Part shown: piece by piece, positions 2,566 through 17,981 of the stretch
Numbering within the stretch: position 1 is the first letter of the stretch
Layout: every line of letters starts with the position of its first letter
NCBI GenBank assembly: GCA_013416795.1
Contig: RQSC01000499.1
Coordinates: forward strand, 1 to 18,717
DNA length: 18,717 bases
Reading direction: 5' to 3'
Origin: Prasinococcaceae sp. CCMP 1430
Lineage: Eukaryota; Plantae; Prasinodermophyta
Made by a program: the position numbers and the translations under genes
The notes under the pieces: generated by a model
What the model was told of the DNA's origin: nothing
The model's input: only the letters and a program-made list of their open reading frames with translations
Databases searched by the model: none

Positions 2566-4014
2566 TCACGCCGACGCGTCCTCGCTCTCCTGATGCATGA
2601 GCGACTCCCTGGAGTCGTACGCCCAGAAGCCCGCCACGTCCGAGAGGATGTTAATCACCACGTCGGAATTGCCGCAGCGCATCAGATCGCCGAGCGTTAT
2701 GCGGTGTGTGTCCCGGGGTGCGATGATGTCCACTACCTCGTCCTCCACGTCATCGGCGTTGATGTCATAGTTGCCCGCCTCCGTCCACTTGACGAGCACC
2801 TCGCGGAAGAAGGTATGCAGGTCCTCGCGGGTGAGGTAGCCCTTTGATCCCACGTCGAGCACGCGGAAGAAGTACGCAGCGGCGTTCGGGTGCTTCTTGT
2901 GCGACATGGCCAGCTCAAACTCCACGAACGCCGGGAATTCCATCTCGGCCGTCGAGTAGCGCCCCTGCTGAGCGCGGCGCTTGCTCACGTGCACCTCAAA
3001 TATGCGCTTCACGAAAACCTGCGTGAGGTTCCCACCACCATATTGCAGCAGCTCTCTGACCGCCAGCGTGCCGTTCATGTCCCTGTCGAGATCCATGAAC
3101 TTCTGCTGGAGCCTCTGCGTGCTCTGCATGCTGAACCAGTTGCGCCCCAGCGCCTCCTGCGGCGGCGCCTCCCCTCCGTCGCCGCCGCGCAGCTCGAAGA
3201 ACTCATTAAGCGCGGGCGAGGCCACCAGTTCCGCAATGCGCACGCGGCCGCGCAAGTGCGCGTCGTGCAGGAAGAGCAGCTTGGCCATGGCGATGTCCAG
3301 CCATGTGGAGCGGAAGCTCTCCTCCATGCCGGACAGCGCGGGGATGGCAGACGCCAGCGTGTCCAGGTAGTCACGCAGCTGCGCCGCGCTGATGTACCGC
3401 GCGTCGTCCGCGTGGAATGTCAGGTGGATGCGGGTCTGCGTGGCGCTCACGGAGCGCATGGCGTATGAGAAGATTGCGAGCGAGGACACGCGCCCGAATC
3501 CGTCCGCAGGGAACTTGAGGAAGGTGGAGGGCGCTAGCAGCGCGCTGCACTTGGCGCCCCACAGCTCGGCCGCGCGAGCGGCGACCTCGCAGTACGCGTC
3601 GTAATCGAGCACCTCCTGGTCGGGCGCGGGCGGCGCTTGCGTGCCGTCGGGCCCCGGGGGCGGCACCTCGCCCGCGACGACGACGCTGTGCTCCTTGAGA
3701 AGGAACCACAAGGACTCCACCTCCTCCGAGTCCAGCAGAAGCTCGTTGCGCAGGCGCAGTGCGCGCATGCGAGCGTCGCGGGAGAACAAGTCGGCCAGGC
3801 TGCCAGCCTCGGCCTTGGGGGTGAAGAGTGCCGGCAGCGACGCGCTGGCGCTCGTGCTCGCGCCGCTGCTCCTCCCTTCATCGGTGCGCAGCCGTTCCAT
3901 CTCGCGTGTGCACAGCTCGGCGATGGCATCCTCCTCGGCGACCTGGTCCGGGGGCGGAAGCGCGTCTGCTATCTCTGCCAGCGCGTGCGCCCAGCCACGC
4001 ACGGTGGTCGTCAT
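2566..4014 (-). CDS. PPP2R3C: Serine/threonine phosphatase 2A regulatory subunit B'' gamma (PPP2R3C / TONNEAU2-FASS family), EF-hand protein, ~482 aa, apparently intronless
   Basis: ATG at 4014 (MTTTVRGW) is in frame with ORF 2566..4290. Family-typical segments: LRNELLLDSEEVESLWFLL, FPADGFGRVS, NWFSMQSTQRLQQKFMDLDRDMNGTL (EF-hand), LTQVFVKRIFE, YFFRVLDVGSKGYLT (EF-hand), DEVVDIIAP...ITLGDL, LSDVAGFWAYDSRE. Confidence 0.9.
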   Translation of the reverse strand: MTTTVRGWAHALAEIADALPPPDQVAEEDAIAELCTREMERLRTDEGRSSGASTSASASLPALFTPKAEAGSLADLFSRDARMRALRLRNELLLDSEEVESLWFLLKEHSVVVAGEVPPPGPDGTQAPPAPDQEVLDYDAYCEVAARAAELWGAKCSALLAPSTFLKFPADGFGRVSSLAIFSYAMRSVSATQTRIHLTFHADDARYISAAQLRDYLDTLASAIPALSGMEESFRSTWLDIAMAKLLFLHDAHLRGRVRIAELVASPALNEFFELRGGDGGEAPPQEALGRNWFSMQSTQRLQQKFMDLDRDMNGTLAVRELLQYGGGNLTQVFVKRIFEVHVSKRRAQQGRYSTAEMEFPAFVEFELAMSHKKHPNAAAYFFRVLDVGSKGYLTREDLHTFFREVLVKWTEAGNYDINADDVEDEVVDIIAPRDTHRITLGDLMRCGNSDVVINILSDVAGFWAYDSRESLMHQESEDASA

Positions 4015-4337
4015 CGCGCGCGGGCCGCCGTCGCACACGGTGTGCCGGCCATGCGACGCGTGTTGGCCTTCCTCCCGCCCGCGCTCACCACCCGCCCGCC
4101 CCTGTGCATCGCGCCCGCGACCACGAGCGCATTTCGAATCCGCGGATGGTCGCTGCGGCGTTTGGGGGAACGCGCGACGTCGTCGCTGTGACTTTGATTT
4201 CCATTGGATGAGCGAAAGGGACCCTTCCGAGGAACCGAGCACGAGCTGCGCCACTCGCAACCCGAATGAAATGGAGGTCGAGTGCGCCAATTGCGAGTAA
4301 CGTCAGATTTACGGGCACGAGCGGCTCGGCATGCGCA

Positions 4338-6136
4338 TCAATCGGGTGTGGCAGGGTCCTCCTGCCCGCCACCACCGCTTGCGTCCGCCGGAGCAGCAGG
4401 GGCAGCCGACGGCCGGGGTTGTTGCCCTGCGGCGGCCGCCACCAGGAGCTCGGCTGCTTGGGCCATCGTGCGTTGGAGCGCCTCACGGCGTGTCTCTGCG
4501 GCGGCGGCGCGCGCCTCTGCGGCGGCAGCAGCGTGCTCAGCGGCGGTGGAGCGCTCCGCCGACGCAATTGACGCCTGGTCACATTCGCGCTGACGCGCGG
4601 ACGCTGCACACGCCACACTCTCGGCTGCCTTGCGCTCAGCCATGGCTTCTTCCTTGGCCGCCCTCTCTTCGCGCAGCGCCACCTCGAGCTCCTCGCACCG
4701 GTCCTTGAGTCGTGCCACCGCGCTCGCTCGCGCCTCGGCGCTGCACGCGTGCCGAGCCGCAGCGCGCTTCTCTGCCTCGGCCTCTTCGCGAGCCTCTCGG
4801 GCATCGGCAGTGGCGCGCTCGGCCGTCGAGCTCGCCCGGTCACGTGACGCTTCAGCCTCGGCGCTGGCAGCCTCAGCGCTGGTCCGCGCGGCCTCGGCGG
4901 CGGCCAACGCGATCTGCATCTCGTTCACACGATGCGCCGTCTCGGCAGCGCTGCGCTCCGCCTCGACCTGCGACTCGTGCGCCTGCGCCACCGACGCAAC
5001 CGCGGCGGAAAGGAGTGGTTGGTTTGGTTTGGTTTGGTTTGGGTCAGCTAAGGGGTCGGCGCACAGGGCGCGCGCGCATGAGGGCGGCGCGAGGTCGCGC
5101 GCGCGGTTCAGCCGAGGTCAGCCCATCCCTCGGCGAGATGGACGAAGGTGTCGGCCAGCACGCGCCTGCGCGTCGCGAACAACTTCACCTTGAACGCTGC
5201 TTCCTCTGCCTGATCTGCTCGGTGCTCTGCGTGCTCGGCGCGCTCTGCGGCGTCGCGCGCCTCCGCTCGTGCCGCCTCGAGCGCTGCTTCGAGCACGTTC
5301 GCCCTGCGCTCCGCGCGTGCGGCGAGCGCCTCACAAAGGGCGGCTTCCACCGTGCGATCGCCCGACGCGCGCGCGGCGTCGAGGGCGCTCTCCCCGCCAC
5401 TGCCGCCACCTGCCCGCGTGGCATGCACAGGAGCACGCGGCTCCGCCCCTGCTGCCACGAGCGTGCCGATGGTGTTCCCGCGCCCCCACTTGGCCGCCTC
5501 CCACAGAGCAAGGTCCAGATGCTCTTGCGCGTGAACGCCGCTGACAAGAAGCGCGCGCACCACGTCGCCAACGCCGAGCTTCGCGGCCGACGCGAGCGCG
5601 GTCAGTCCGCGCGCGTCCCCGAGAGCGGCGAGCGCGCTCGAGTCGTCGCCCGCACGCTGGAGCACCTCGCGCACGACGACAGCGGCACCCTCAGGGAAGG
5701 GCGAGAGCGCGGCGGCGTGCAGAGCGCTCTCGCCGAAGGCGCTGCGCGAAAGCGGGTCGGCGCCGGCGCAGAGCAGCACGAGCACTGTCTCGGCGCTTCC
5801 TGCGCGCGCAGCGGCGCAGAGGGCTGGCTCGCCGCCGGCGTCGACGGCATCGGCGGGGGCTGCGCCGGCCTCGAGCAGAGCGAGCACTTGGAGCGTGTCC
5901 CCCGCGGCGGCGCGCTCAACGAGCACGTCGCCGCCGGCGACGGAAACGAAGGTGTCCTCGTCCGAGGCCGGCTCGGACTCCGCAGCTGATGCTGCCAGCG
6001 CGGCGCGTCGGGGCACGGCGCGCGCGCGCCTCAGGAGGTCAGAGATCGTGTCGTCGGAGCTCGTATTGGGACCGTGCTCGGCAGCGGCGACGGTGGCCTC
6101 GGCAGCGGCGGGTGGGGCGGGGCGGCGCCGCGACAT
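4338..6136 (-). CDS. Ankyrin-repeat protein with long C-terminal coiled coil (~530 aa), join(complement 5189..6136, 4338..4982)
   Basis: ATG at 6136 (MSRRRPAP). Ankyrin-like repeats: GEPALCAAARAGSAETVLVLLCAGAD, GESALHAAA, GLTALASAAKLGVGDVVRALLVSG, GESALDAARASGDRTVEAAL. Phase-0 intron 4983..5188 has donor AAG|GTGAAG, CTGAC (plus-strand GTCAG at 5043-5047) and first-AG acceptor GCGCAG|. It joins in frame to the A/E/R-rich coiled-coil ORF 4338..4991. Confidence 0.75.
5021..5040. repeat. (GGTTT)4 pentanucleotide microsatellite inside the ankyrin-gene intron
   Basis: ggtttggtttggtttggttt read directly, preceded by a partial GGTT. On the transcribed strand it reads (AAACC)4 and lies between the branch site and the acceptor. 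Confidence 0.9.
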
Positions 6137-6435
6137 GGAGCTCGCAGCGGGCCGGCGGGGGCCACCTCTCGCGCCCTTCGGGCGCGTGCGCGCGGAGTGC
6201 CGCCGCCCTCGCGCCGCGCCGCGAGCGCGGGGTCCCCTGTCAGCACCCCCCACTCTGCCACTCCAAAGGCGCCCACCCGTTTTCGAACGAGGGATGGATG
6301 ATGTTCGAACCGCCGCGATGCGCGAGCCGCGGCGTTGACCCGCGCACTGACTCGCCTGCGTGCGCGAGGCGGCAGAGGTCGCGTGAGCGGCGCGGCGCGG
6401 TGGCCCATTGCCAAGACTGGGCGGGCCGCGCGAGC
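6137..6435. promoter_or_regulatory. Putative bidirectional promoter / shared 5' region between the divergent ankyrin and kinesin genes
   Basis: 299 bp between head-to-head ATGs at 6136 (-) and 6436 (+). Inferred from gene orientation only; no specific motif recognised. Confidence 0.4.
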
Positions 6436-8880
6436 ATGGAGCCGGCGAGCGCGGCCTGCCAGCCATGCGGCGCGGGTGGCCGCGCGGAGGGGGCAGGGGC
6501 AGGCGGCGCGAACGGCGGGCCGCCGCTGTGGGTCTTTGCTGTGCTGCGCCACGCCGGCTGGCGCGAGCGCGCACACGTGGGTGCGCTGTGCCGCGAGTGG
6601 CGCGCCGGGCTCAGCGCGGACGGACGGAGTATTTACTGGCGCGTGCTCTGCGAGGCGCTCGCCGACTCAACAGGCGTGTACATCGACACCAAGCGGGAAG
6701 ACGCGGTCGACTGGCGGGAGGCCTTCCGCGGCATGTGGCGGATGAGAACCAGGTTTGCAGGGCGCGCCAAGGGGGTGCGCGAGCGCGAGGGATGGGGTGA
6801 GCGCGAGGACGTGGACGGACATGGATGTATGGGCGCGGAAGAGGACGCGGATGGTAGCGGCGGCGAGCCGGCCGCCGAGTCGACGACTTTCTCCATCCGC
6901 GTGTGTGCGCGGTTCCGTCCGCTGCGCGCGCCGGCTGCTGGAGCGGCGGGCACGGCCGGGGCGCGGCGCGTCATCCTACCGCTTCACCAGCGCCTGGCGA
7001 TGATCCGCGCGCGCGGCGTCGTCGAAGGCGAGAAGGCTGTCAGCCAGTCGGATGCGCTGCGCACGCTGTGGGCCGAGGTCGGCAGGCGGAACGACAGCGA
7101 GGCCGGGCCGTGGAGGGACCAGCGCGCGGTGCCCGAGGAGGCGCCGCGCGCAGGAAGCCACGACGGGCGGGAAGGCCAGGGCGGCGCCCCGGAAGAGGCG
7201 GCCGACGCAGAACAGCCGGAGCAGGGCGCTGCCTCCGACTTAGCCGCCTCAGTGGTGAGCGTTGACGAGGAGAGCGGCGCTGTGCTCACGGTCGCCCCGC
7301 CGCTCGGACTGCGCGAATGGAAGTTTGACGCGGCACTACCCAGTGGCGCTGGGCAAGCGCGCGTGTACGCGGCCACCGCCAAGGCCATCGTCGCGGACTT
7401 CATCAACGGACGCGACGGTTGCGTCTTCGCGTACGGCCAGACGGGCTCGGGCAAGACACACTCAATGGTCGGCCCTGATGGAGCGCTGCGCTCCGAGCGC
7501 GAGGCGGACAACCGCGGCATTATCCCGCGCGCGCTCGATGAGGCCGTCGCTGCGGTCGAGTGGCGCAGGCGCTGGCTGGCCGAGCGCGGCGCGGGGTCGG
7601 ACGCGATCGGGCTCACGCTGTCGTACGTTGAGGTCTTTGGTGACGAGGTGACCGACTTGCTCAAGGCGGGCAGGAGGGTGGGTCAGAACAAGGTCGCGGC
7701 GCAGCGATACGTCCTCGAAGGTGTGTGCACGCGCGAACGAGCTAGGCCGGGGCGCCGCGCCGCACGATCGATCGTGCTCGCGCTCGCACGCTGATCCACG
7801 GACGCCACTGTGCTCGCGGCTGCCCCCAACGCGCGAGCGCAGGCGCGGCGGCCCAGCGCGTCTCGTCCCTGGAGGACGCACTCCGCCTGGTGATGCTAGG
7901 GCTGTCACAGCGCAGGGTCGCCGCGACGCGCATGAACGAGCGCTCCTCGCGCGCTCACGCGCTGCTGACGCTCACGCTCGAGCAACCCGATGCCGCGAGC
8001 GAGTCAGCGCCGCCGCTCGTATCGCGCCTCATCCTGGCCGATCTGGGCGGCTCAGAGAAGGTGGACAAGTCGGGCGCAAACGCTGGTCTTGCCGCCCCGG
8101 GCGCGGCCAACTGGCACGAATACTACGCGAGTAGGGAGCGCCTCGTAGAAGGTGTGTTCTGCGCGCCATTGCAGGTCAAGGGACGGTGCGAGTCGCCCCG
8201 ATTAGCCATACAGCGCACTGGCCACCTCACTGCATCGCTGAGCGATGGCGGTGGCGCGGACGACCGCTGACCGGCCGCGCTCGGCCCTCCTCACCAACTC
8301 TCGCCCGCCCGAAATCCTCGCAGCCGCCAACATCAACAGTGGCCTGTTCGCGCTCAAGCGCGTGATCGCCGCCCTGAACGATCGGCAGCGGCTGAGCGCA
8401 GAGGGCGACGCGCGCGGCGCCGCTCGGGTGCACGTCCCCCACCAAGACAGCCGGTTGACGCTCATCCTGTCGTCTGCGCTGACGGGCGGGGCGCGCTGCT
8501 CCGTGTGCGTGACGTGCGCCTCCGAGGCCGAGCACGTGTCCGAGACCCTACAGACCCTGCGCTTTGGCGAGTCAACGCGGCAGGTGGCGCACACGAGCAT
8601 CGACCTCTCAGACGTGGCGCGATCCGCCCTGCGTGCCGCGCTAGCCACGCTTGACGCGGGCATTGCGCGCTGCGAAGAGGAGATCCGAGTGCGCGAGCGC
8701 TGGGAGACAAAGGAGGTGCGGCGCGTGGACAAGATGACGCAGGAGGTTGAGCTCCTTCGCGTGACGGCTCCTGTTGGAGCGGAAGAGTCGCGCGAGCGCC
8801 TCGAGGCGCTTCTGGTCAAGAGGCGAACGCTGCTCGGCCACGGCAGCGGCGCGCAGCCAGAGGGGGGCGCGGGCGGTTGA
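6436..8880 (+). CDS. Kinesin motor protein with N-terminal F-box-like domain (~716 aa), join(6436..7720,7843..8151,8324..8880)
   Basis: Motor motifs: IRVCARFRP (6895), FAYGQTGSGKTHSM P-loop (7435-7458), RGIIPRA, LSYVEVFGDEVTDLL, TRMNERSSRAH switch I, LILADLGGSEK switch II, RLVEAANINSGLFALKRVIAAL (rebuilt across intron 2), HVPHQDSRLT, ETLQTLRFG. Both phase-1 introns (7721..7842 and 8152..8323) begin GAAG|GTGTGT, contain CTGAT/CTGAC and end in CAG. The spliced length of 2151 nt is 717 codons. Confidence 0.92.
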
Positions 8881-16121: not shown

Positions 16122-17648
16122 TCACGCGGCCTTGGCGGCGGTGGCGCGTTGCGGGTTGCCCATCTTGTGGAGGTGCCTGAGGTGGCTCATGATGGCGTCG
16201 CCGGCCCCCGGCAGGCAGCGGTACGGCACGCCGTGGTCCGCGCAGCACTTCGCGATGATGGGCTGGATGCTCGGGTAGTGGAACTGCGAGACGCCCGGCA
16301 GCAGGTGGTGCACGACCTGGTAGTTGAGCCCGCCGGTCATCAGGTAGGTCAGCAGCGAGCCGTGACCGTAGTCCTGCGTGGTGGCCACCTGCTCCTCCGC
16401 CCACTTCCCCCCGACGTGCTTCCCCGTGGCGACGCCGTCGGCGACGTGCGAGCACTGGAAGCAGCTCGCCAGGTACATGCCGCCAAGCCAGTCCGCGGCC
16501 ACGAATTGCAGCGCCACGCGCGCCGGGCTGAAGCCCAGCGCGAGCGGCACGCCGAGCTGCATGGCGAGGAAGGCCGCCTTGCCGCCCCAGAAGGCGAGCC
16601 GGTCGACGGCGCGGGGCGGCCGAAGCCGGCAGGCGCCCTTGAAGCCCGACAGGAAGCAGGCGACGTCCCTGGCGCGCGTCACGAGGCCCATGGCGCCGTA
16701 CAGCGGCACCGCGTACAGCGCCTGGAAGCGGTGAAACCACCGCAGCTGCTGGCCCTCGTGGAAGCGCAGCATCGGCTCGCTGTCCATGTCGTCGTCCACG
16801 CCCGGCACGTTGCAGTACAGGTGGTGCACGAGCAGGTGCTGGTGCTGCCACATGTAGAAGGACGTGCCGTTGATGACGTCGTTGCCCACCACGCCCACCA
16901 CGTGCCACCAGCGCGGATCCTTGCCCAGCGAGCCGTGCGAGGCGTCGTGCAGGACGTGCACGCCGCTCAGCGCGCGCGACACGCCCGCCAGCGCGGCGAA
17001 CGCCACCGCCGCGGCCGCGCTGGGCGCCGACAGGCTGGCGTACATGAAGCCGACGATGAGCGCCACGATGGCCGCCAGCCGCAGGGCCTGCGTGGGACCG
17101 TCGTGCCACTGCTGGCAGTACCGCGACTCGGTCGCGATGTACGAGTGCACGCGCCGCTTCAGGTCGACGTAGAACGGCGTCGCGATGTCGTCGCGGACGT
17201 ACTGGGGGAGCCCCTGGAGGAGGGGGTCGCTTCTGCTGTCGGGAGCGCTTGGGTCCCCTGCCTGGTGGAGAGGGGGAGCTTGAAACGTGCCCACCTCGTA
17301 CTTGGCCAGCAGGGGCTCGACCTTGGCCGTGTTCGGGTGGTAGCTCTCGAAGAGCGCGGTCGCGTCGCGGCCCGCCGCCAGCAGCAGCATGATGCGCCCG
17401 CCCGGGTGCCGCGAGAGAAAGGAGGTCAGGTCGTACACCTTGCCGCGCACGGCGACCTTGAGGGAGCTCGCGGTGTTGTGGCGCTCGAGCTCGGCGAGGG
17501 TGTACACCTGGCTTCTTTGCGCGTGTGGCTGGTCCGGGCCGGGCGGTGACGCGTGTGGTCGCTGCGGCGGTGGGGGGCGAGCGAGCGCGGAGGGAGGCGA
17601 CGCGGCGCAGTTGGGGGGCGGCGAAACGCCCCTGCGGCTACGCAGCAT
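16122..17648 (-). CDS. Front-end fatty acid desaturase with N-terminal cytochrome b5 domain, Delta-5-like (~508 aa; alternative start 17672), intronless
   Basis: Cyt b5 domain YTLAELERHN...KVYDLTSFLSRHPGGRIMLLLAAGRDATALFESYH. His boxes: HDASH, HQHLLVHH and QVVHH (third box begins with Q, diagnostic of front-end desaturases). FWGGKA, QVATTQDY, TGGLNYQ.VHHL.P.VSQ.HYP and HLRHL resemble the Mortierella-type Delta-5 desaturases as I recall them. Confidence 0.93.
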   Translation of the reverse strand: MLRSRRGVSPPPNCAASPPSALARPPPPQRPHASPPGPDQPHAQRSQVYTLAELERHNTASSLKVAVRGKVYDLTSFLSRHPGGRIMLLLAAGRDATALFESYHPNTAKVEPLLAKYEVGTFQAPPLHQAGDPSAPDSRSDPLLQGLPQYVRDDIATPFYVDLKRRVHSYIATESRYCQQWHDGPTQALRLAAIVALIVGFMYASLSAPSAAAAVAFAALAGVSRALSGVHVLHDASHGSLGKDPRWWHVVGVVGNDVINGTSFYMWQHQHLLVHHLYCNVPGVDDDMDSEPMLRFHEGQQLRWFHRFQALYAVPLYGAMGLVTRARDVACFLSGFKGACRLRPPRAVDRLAFWGGKAAFLAMQLGVPLALGFSPARVALQFVAADWLGGMYLASCFQCSHVADGVATGKHVGGKWAEEQVATTQDYGHGSLLTYLMTGGLNYQVVHHLLPGVSQFHYPSIQPIIAKCCADHGVPYRCLPGAGDAIMSHLRHLHKMGNPQRATAAKAA

Positions 17649-17981
17649 GCTCCCTCCCCCCGGGACGCACATGCTTCGTTTTCTTTTGTGCGTGCGTTGG
17701 GTGGTGCGCCGACCTGAGACGGCGGGCTGCGCGCCGTGGTCGGCGCGCGTGCACGCGCGCGCCGGCGGGAGGGGGGGGGGGGCGCTGCGTCGCGTCTGGC
17801 GCGCTCCACGGCCATCCAAAATCGTGACGTGAGGGCGCGCACGCGCGGTGCGCACCACCAACTGACGCGGACGGGGGGTGCGTCGTGGGAACGAGAAGAT
17901 CTTTTCGGTGAGCATTCAAGATATCCGGAAAATCGGGGCCCGCGGCAGGATTTCAAGTCAAAACGAACTGAGCAAAAAAGA

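Follow-up and report, generated by a model that had tools for sequence, protein, structure and literature searches.

F-boxes and kinesins are each textbook modules, the F-box being the module that links proteins to the SCF ubiquitin ligase via Skp1. We asked whether the two are joined in a single protein encoded by an 18,717-nucleotide stretch of DNA from the alga Prasinococcaceae sp. CCMP 1430 (contig RQSC01000499.1; this whole stretch is the window, ~72% GC across its length). The original prediction, made from the letters alone, had proposed that an F-box-like domain is fused to the N-terminus of a kinesin motor and that the motor might carry SCF.

The gene has three exons (window 6436-8880, plus strand), all of which are a 100% match to P0122, the 716-amino acid EukProt entry PRCOL_00004049-RA from Prasinoderma coloniale, which starts at 6436. 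Exon borders were read from the sequence, with P0122 as the reference for the spliced product:

6436-7720, plus strand: exon 1, stop-free, ending in phase 1 with a GT donor at 7721 and 100% identical to P0122 residues 1-429; from the ATG on, it encodes a leader rich in Gly and Ala, then the F-box-like domain, a linker and the opening two fifths of the motor.
7721-7842, plus strand: intron 1 (GT..AG).
7843-8151, plus strand: exon 2, which carries switch I and switch II.
8152-8323, plus strand: intron 2 (GT..AG).
8324-8880, plus strand: exon 3, encoding the last part of the motor, the neck region and the conserved tail, and closed by a TGA stop (8878-8880).

Alignment with P0002, a 47%-identical relative, fell into three blocks whose edges coincide with these exon borders. 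Metatranscriptome pieces that were ~97-98% identical to the gene lay inside exons (7279-7459, 8000-8150 and 8600-8853). Within these short pieces, which come from assembled contigs only, neither a splice joint nor the 5′ end was seen.

To place the motor, we compared it with Pfam models, solved structures and the other members of its family. The Pfam kinesin motor (PF00225) was found in each exon and scored 228 bits in the full protein, P0122. The motor and the regions specific to this family are:

6889-6921, plus strand: motor strand β1, FSIRVCARFRP (residues 152-162), kinesin-1-like; the strand in the model spans 154-160.
6976-6996, plus strand: LPLHQRL motif (residues 181-187), in a ~120-residue family-specific insertion between β1 and the remaining motor.
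7435-7458, plus strand: P-loop GQTGSGKT (residues 334-341), invariant in the family.
7935-7958, plus strand: switch I NERSSRAH, in exon 2, invariant in the family (41 relatives).
8040-8057, plus strand: switch II DLGGSE, in exon 2, invariant in the family (41 relatives).
8605-8835, plus strand: conserved tail (residues 626-702), predicted to form a helix, a β-hairpin and a helix, with ERWE and VGAE..R..LE.LL motifs.

Within β1, residues V156, R159 and P162 are invariant or nearly invariant in the family. The protein qualifies as a member of the kinesin superfamily, with intact ATPase motifs in its motor. Its place within the superfamily is less clear. Among solved motors, kinesin-1 was best at 134.7 bits, with KIF15 (129) and KIF7 (125) next, so that kinesin-12 and KIF7 come close to kinesin-1; for the P0002 motor, kinesin-5 ranked first. 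Since KIF15 and KIF7 score near kinesin-1 and kinesin-5 is top for P0002, we regard the motor as kinesin-1-like but ungrouped, as similarity to solved motors points to no clear family. Membership in kinesin-1 was rejected because of these close scores and because the tail is just ~95 residues, with no long coiled-coil stalk. The RFRP signature of β1 and the intact P-loop and switch motifs are common to the window protein and the kinesin-1 heavy chain (KIF5/KHC). Unlike KIF5/KHC, the window protein has ~150 residues ahead of the motor, the ~120-residue insertion with LPLHQRL after β1 and, where KIF5/KHC has its long stalk, a short tail of ~95 residues consisting of helix, hairpin and helix.

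Both the insertion and the tail are well conserved. In LPLHQRL, all of 41 sequences have P182, H184 and Q185, while conservation of L181 and of L183 exceeds 90%. In the full-length model, two confident helices (183-196 and 204-215) flank a disordered stretch of the insertion. The motif may be where a partner or a substrate binds. The tail is modeled with pLDDT 85-92; it has no Pfam match, and the prediction is not a long coiled coil. The full-length model reached a pTM of 0.77 despite disordered linkers, and a Foldseek search with it returned kinesin motors only.

The N-terminal segment lies where the original prediction had placed it, with P29 encoded at 6520 and the last base of the F107 codon at 6756, and it is read in frame with the ATG at 6436. 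As also foreseen, the segment and the motor share an exon and a reading frame, since β1 is encoded in exon 1 as well. Ahead of the motor we distinguish three parts:

6520-6651, plus strand: F-box core (residues 29-72), with PP at the canonical LP site, three short helices, and CREW and YWRVLC elements.
6652-6756, plus strand: helical extension (residues 73-107) behind the F-box, marked by a conserved LY..P......W+..F..L...R..W pattern.
6757-6888, plus strand: linker (residues 108-151), acidic, Gly-rich, poorly conserved (alignment gaps) and predicted to be disordered.

For the linker, pLDDT in the full-length model is below 50 at residues 113-146.

Taken by itself, the window segment did not identify itself as an F-box. 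Five cuts of it gave no match to the Pfam F-box models (PF00646 and PF12937), even at E 10, and a single-sequence PDB search with the segment returned no F-box protein. A weak PDB match to the mitoribosomal protein mL119 (E 0.016) was taken as chance. In contrast, profiles built from the family matched F-box proteins almost exclusively when searched against 177,635 distinct solved sequences. With a 29-member profile of the N-terminal domain that included the window, 33 of 34 PDB matches were F-box proteins (best E 2.1e-7); with a 46-member profile from which the window was left out, all 35 were (best E 1.6e-7). These matches, which fall on the F-box itself of the matched proteins, include the FBXW12 family, FBXO3, GID2/SLY1, Skp2, FBXW7, FBXW8 and beta-TrCP, as well as FBXL3/5/17, FBXO4/31, Cdc4 and TIR1. 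Nine of the 29 family members matched Pfam F-box-like individually (best E 5.9e-4), and the Pelagococcus and Cymbomonas members also match it. The relatives' scores (14-15 bits) all fall below the gathering score of 24.3, which accounts for the lack of an F-box annotation in every source. The F-box-like call of the original prediction therefore holds for the family profiles and fails for the window segment alone. The best PDB alignments extended beyond the F-box into the LY...W+..F region, in agreement with the later W..F element that had been pointed out; here the extension corresponds, by alignment, to the stretch that follows the F-box in FBXW12-family proteins and to linker helices in Cdc4 and beta-TrCP. 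At helix 1, where Leu-Pro is canonical, the window has Pro-Pro, and the relatives have Ile, Met or Pro followed by Pro, with many keeping I/M-P.

Structure prediction gave a similar picture. The AlphaFold (AF2) model of residues 25-112 (pLDDT 89.6) contains three short helices (model residues 8-15, 18-25 and 29-36) and then three more. When this model was compared with the PDB using Foldseek, ranks 1-5 were all F-box proteins, although the best E of 1.5 is not significant. Re-alignment of the Foldseek matches placed F-box proteins in all of the top 14 positions (Z 4-5), aligned over the F-box and linker helices. In a search of 48,161 chains that was independent of Foldseek, FBXO31 came first (Z 5.4) and Cdc4, FBXW8, Fbs2, beta-TrCP and FBXO3 were within the top 13, with unrelated helical proteins at Z 3.5-4.5; Z scores of 4-5.4 do not rise above the noise for small helical models. 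In the ESM Atlas, F-box clusters made up four of the ten best rows (TM 0.46-0.57). A language-model search for look-alikes of the P0002 N-terminus gave an F-box cluster as best match, with a score of 0.86 that is below the trust level and serves as a lead only. Structure comparison thus favored the original prediction in its rankings, which F-box proteins head, and not in its scores, which lack significance. The modeled fold is consistent with an F-box and the matches are enriched for F-box proteins, which is not decisive alone. Together with the profile matches, it supports assignment of residues 29-72 as a divergent but homologous F-box, an identity that is established at the level of the family. 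As in canonical F-box proteins (Skp2, FBXW7/Cdc4, beta-TrCP, FBXO3 and the mouse FBXW12 family), the putative F-box is N-terminal and, as modeled, would form three helices over ~40 residues ahead of a helical extension. Canonical F-box proteins carry a C-terminal WD40, LRR or other substrate-binding domain, while the window protein carries a kinesin motor; it also differs from them in having PP for LP and in scoring below the Pfam thresholds.

We determined how widely the N-terminal domain occurs with a kinesin motor. A word-index search with exon 1 retrieved 235 kinesins, many of which align from about residue 29 on. A leave-out profile, made without the window, P0002 and P0087, scored window residues 29-109 at E 3.4e-24. 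This profile found the domain in at least 68 kinesins (68 of the 120 listed), always at the N-terminus. Named members are the green algae Prasinoderma coloniale and Cymbomonas tetramitiformis; Pelagococcus subviridis, Rhizochromulina marina and Ochromonadaceae sp. CCMP2298; diatoms of the genus Cylindrotheca; and the labyrinthulomycete Hondaea fermentalgiana. Triparma strigata gave a partial match. Since the kinesins that bear the domain include transcript-derived open reading frames marked complete (MMETSP, EukProt), the fusion is expressed as a single reading frame in relatives. These comparisons show that the F-box-like domain and the motor are truly fused and that at least 68 relatives, in stramenopiles and two green algal lineages, share the fusion. 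In a quick tree of 41 members, the Prasinoderma copy paired with the metagenomic P0002, apart from the copy of the green alga Cymbomonas. Because the deep branches of this tree are poorly separated, we make no claim as to vertical descent or transfer. The named sources label these proteins as plain kinesin or hypothetical protein.

In one relative, P0087, a U-box (residues 153-224, E 2.8e-12) separates the F-box-like domain from the motor; against the leave-out profile, P0087 scored E 3e-9. Its U-box ties the family to ubiquitin ligation a second time and independently, in one sequence. A different kinesin, P0094, has its motor at the N-terminus and a U-box (residues 467-532) at the C-terminus and is without the N-terminal domain. 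What the U-box kinesins P0087 and P0094 have in common with the window protein is a motor fused to a domain of ubiquitin-ligase type. The two kinds of domain differ in that a U-box binds E2 directly, while an F-box requires Skp1-Cul1-Rbx1.

Two alternative explanations concern the N-terminal segment itself. One is that the segment is a small helical domain that arose separately and resembles F-boxes by chance or through its composition. The missing match for the single sequence and the weak fold scores are what this explanation would account for. It does not sit well with two profiles whose PDB matches are F-box proteins (33/34 and 35/35), hit on the F-box with E values as low as 1.6e-7, with independent Pfam matches in nine members, or with the enrichment of F-box proteins in the fold searches. 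We consider a chance match very unlikely, and this reading is disfavored. The other is that the segment is untranslated in Prasinoderma, with the true start at the in-frame Met100 or Met103, which lie inside the segment, or further downstream, such that the F-box would be a relic in the 5′ leader and the protein would be made without it. In its favor, further in-frame ATGs upstream (6298 and 6301) show that sequence alone does not fix the start, although starting there would only make the leader longer. Against a downstream start, the segment, read in this frame, scores E 3.4e-24 with the family profile, and its GC content at the three codon positions (0.67/0.57/0.85 for 6520-6756) matches the motor exons, while upstream of 6436 the position-2 GC is intron-like. 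Moreover, the curated model begins at 6436, and the N-termini of homologues lie 1-30 residues ahead of the domain. Because the curated model, conservation and codon composition agree, we take ATG 6436 as the start, rather than one past 6756, a start that would have removed the segment on which the original prediction depends. Translation from 6436 would include the F-box, and conservation argues against Met100 and Met103. That the segment is an untranslated relic is, in our view, the most improbable of the explanations considered here.

What might an F-box do on a kinesin? The reading we favor, with moderate confidence, is that the protein is an ungrouped kinesin that carries a divergent F-box with its extension, followed by a disordered linker, and that it functions as a Skp1-docking, microtubule-localized SCF receptor or as a Skp1-regulated motor. 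The ~40-residue disordered linker would tether the F-box domain to the motor. If the F-box docks Skp1, as expected from established knowledge of F-boxes, the motor would put Skp1 on microtubules, with or without Cul1-Rbx1, and the kinesin could act either as a microtubule-localized SCF receptor or as a motor that Skp1 regulates. Substrates might be held by the conserved tail or by the invariant LPLHQRL insert. A more specific proposal is that the family consists of motor-coupled SCF receptors, in which the motor replaces the substrate-binding domain, Skp1-Cul1-Rbx1 is carried or parked on microtubules to ubiquitinate microtubule-bound proteins, and a U-box was added in one member. We put this forward tentatively, as it is rather doubtful in this full form. 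A ciliary role, also raised in the original prediction, received no support from anything seen.

The main rival to a Skp1-docking kinesin is a descendant of an F-box that does not bind Skp1 and serves instead as a lineage-specific regulatory, autoinhibitory or cargo/partner-binding head, with no role in ubiquitin ligation. In favor of this explanation are the altered Leu-Pro, which is Pro-Pro in the window, and the degree of divergence, which is enough to drop the domain below the Pfam thresholds. Some F-box proteins have non-SCF roles, and the pTM of 0.77 for the full-length model may mean that the domains pack together. However, the most conserved columns of the domain are those of the F-box profile (hydrophobic helix 1, L.K.W in helix 3 and the next W), the hydrophobic-Pro start is retained as I/M-P in many members, and one member has a U-box inserted, all of which speak against loss of Skp1 binding. 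We judge such a loss unlikely and prefer the Skp1-docking kinesin.

Across ~8.4 million full-text papers and preprints, a set from which many subscription-journal papers are absent, we found no description of an F-box and a kinesin in one protein, and a 2010 survey of kinesins mentions neither F-box nor U-box (PMC2867816). What is new is an F-box protein with a kinesin motor as its C-terminal module, in a conserved family so far annotated only as kinesin; standard Pfam annotation does not pick up the F-box of these kinesins. Should the F-box bind Skp1, the family would physically couple a motor of the cytoskeleton with the main ubiquitin ligase of the cell cycle and offer a direct route by which protein degradation could be brought to the spindle or to microtubules of the cytoplasm. 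This idea is testable, because members of the family are present in diatoms (Cylindrotheca), some species of which can be transformed.

Copies of the locus that are ~98% identical (P0001 and its cluster members, covering window 6301-7791) were present in marine metagenome assemblies (ENA, Logan), so a close relative of the Prasinoderma alga occurs in seawater samples. P0001 and its cluster members were called as unspliced open reading frames of 497-498 amino acids, from the upstream ATG at 6301.

The window also contains other genes. A divergent ankyrin-repeat gene (5108-6136, minus strand) starts ~300 bases upstream of the kinesin ATG, and the interval between them (6137-6435) probably serves both genes as a bidirectional promoter region. 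Further away, an open reading frame at 2566-4290 (minus strand) encodes pairs of EF-hands, the EF-hand_13 type included, and another at 16122-17915 (minus strand) encodes a fusion of cytochrome b5 with a fatty-acid desaturase, arranged as in front-end desaturases, which looks ordinary.
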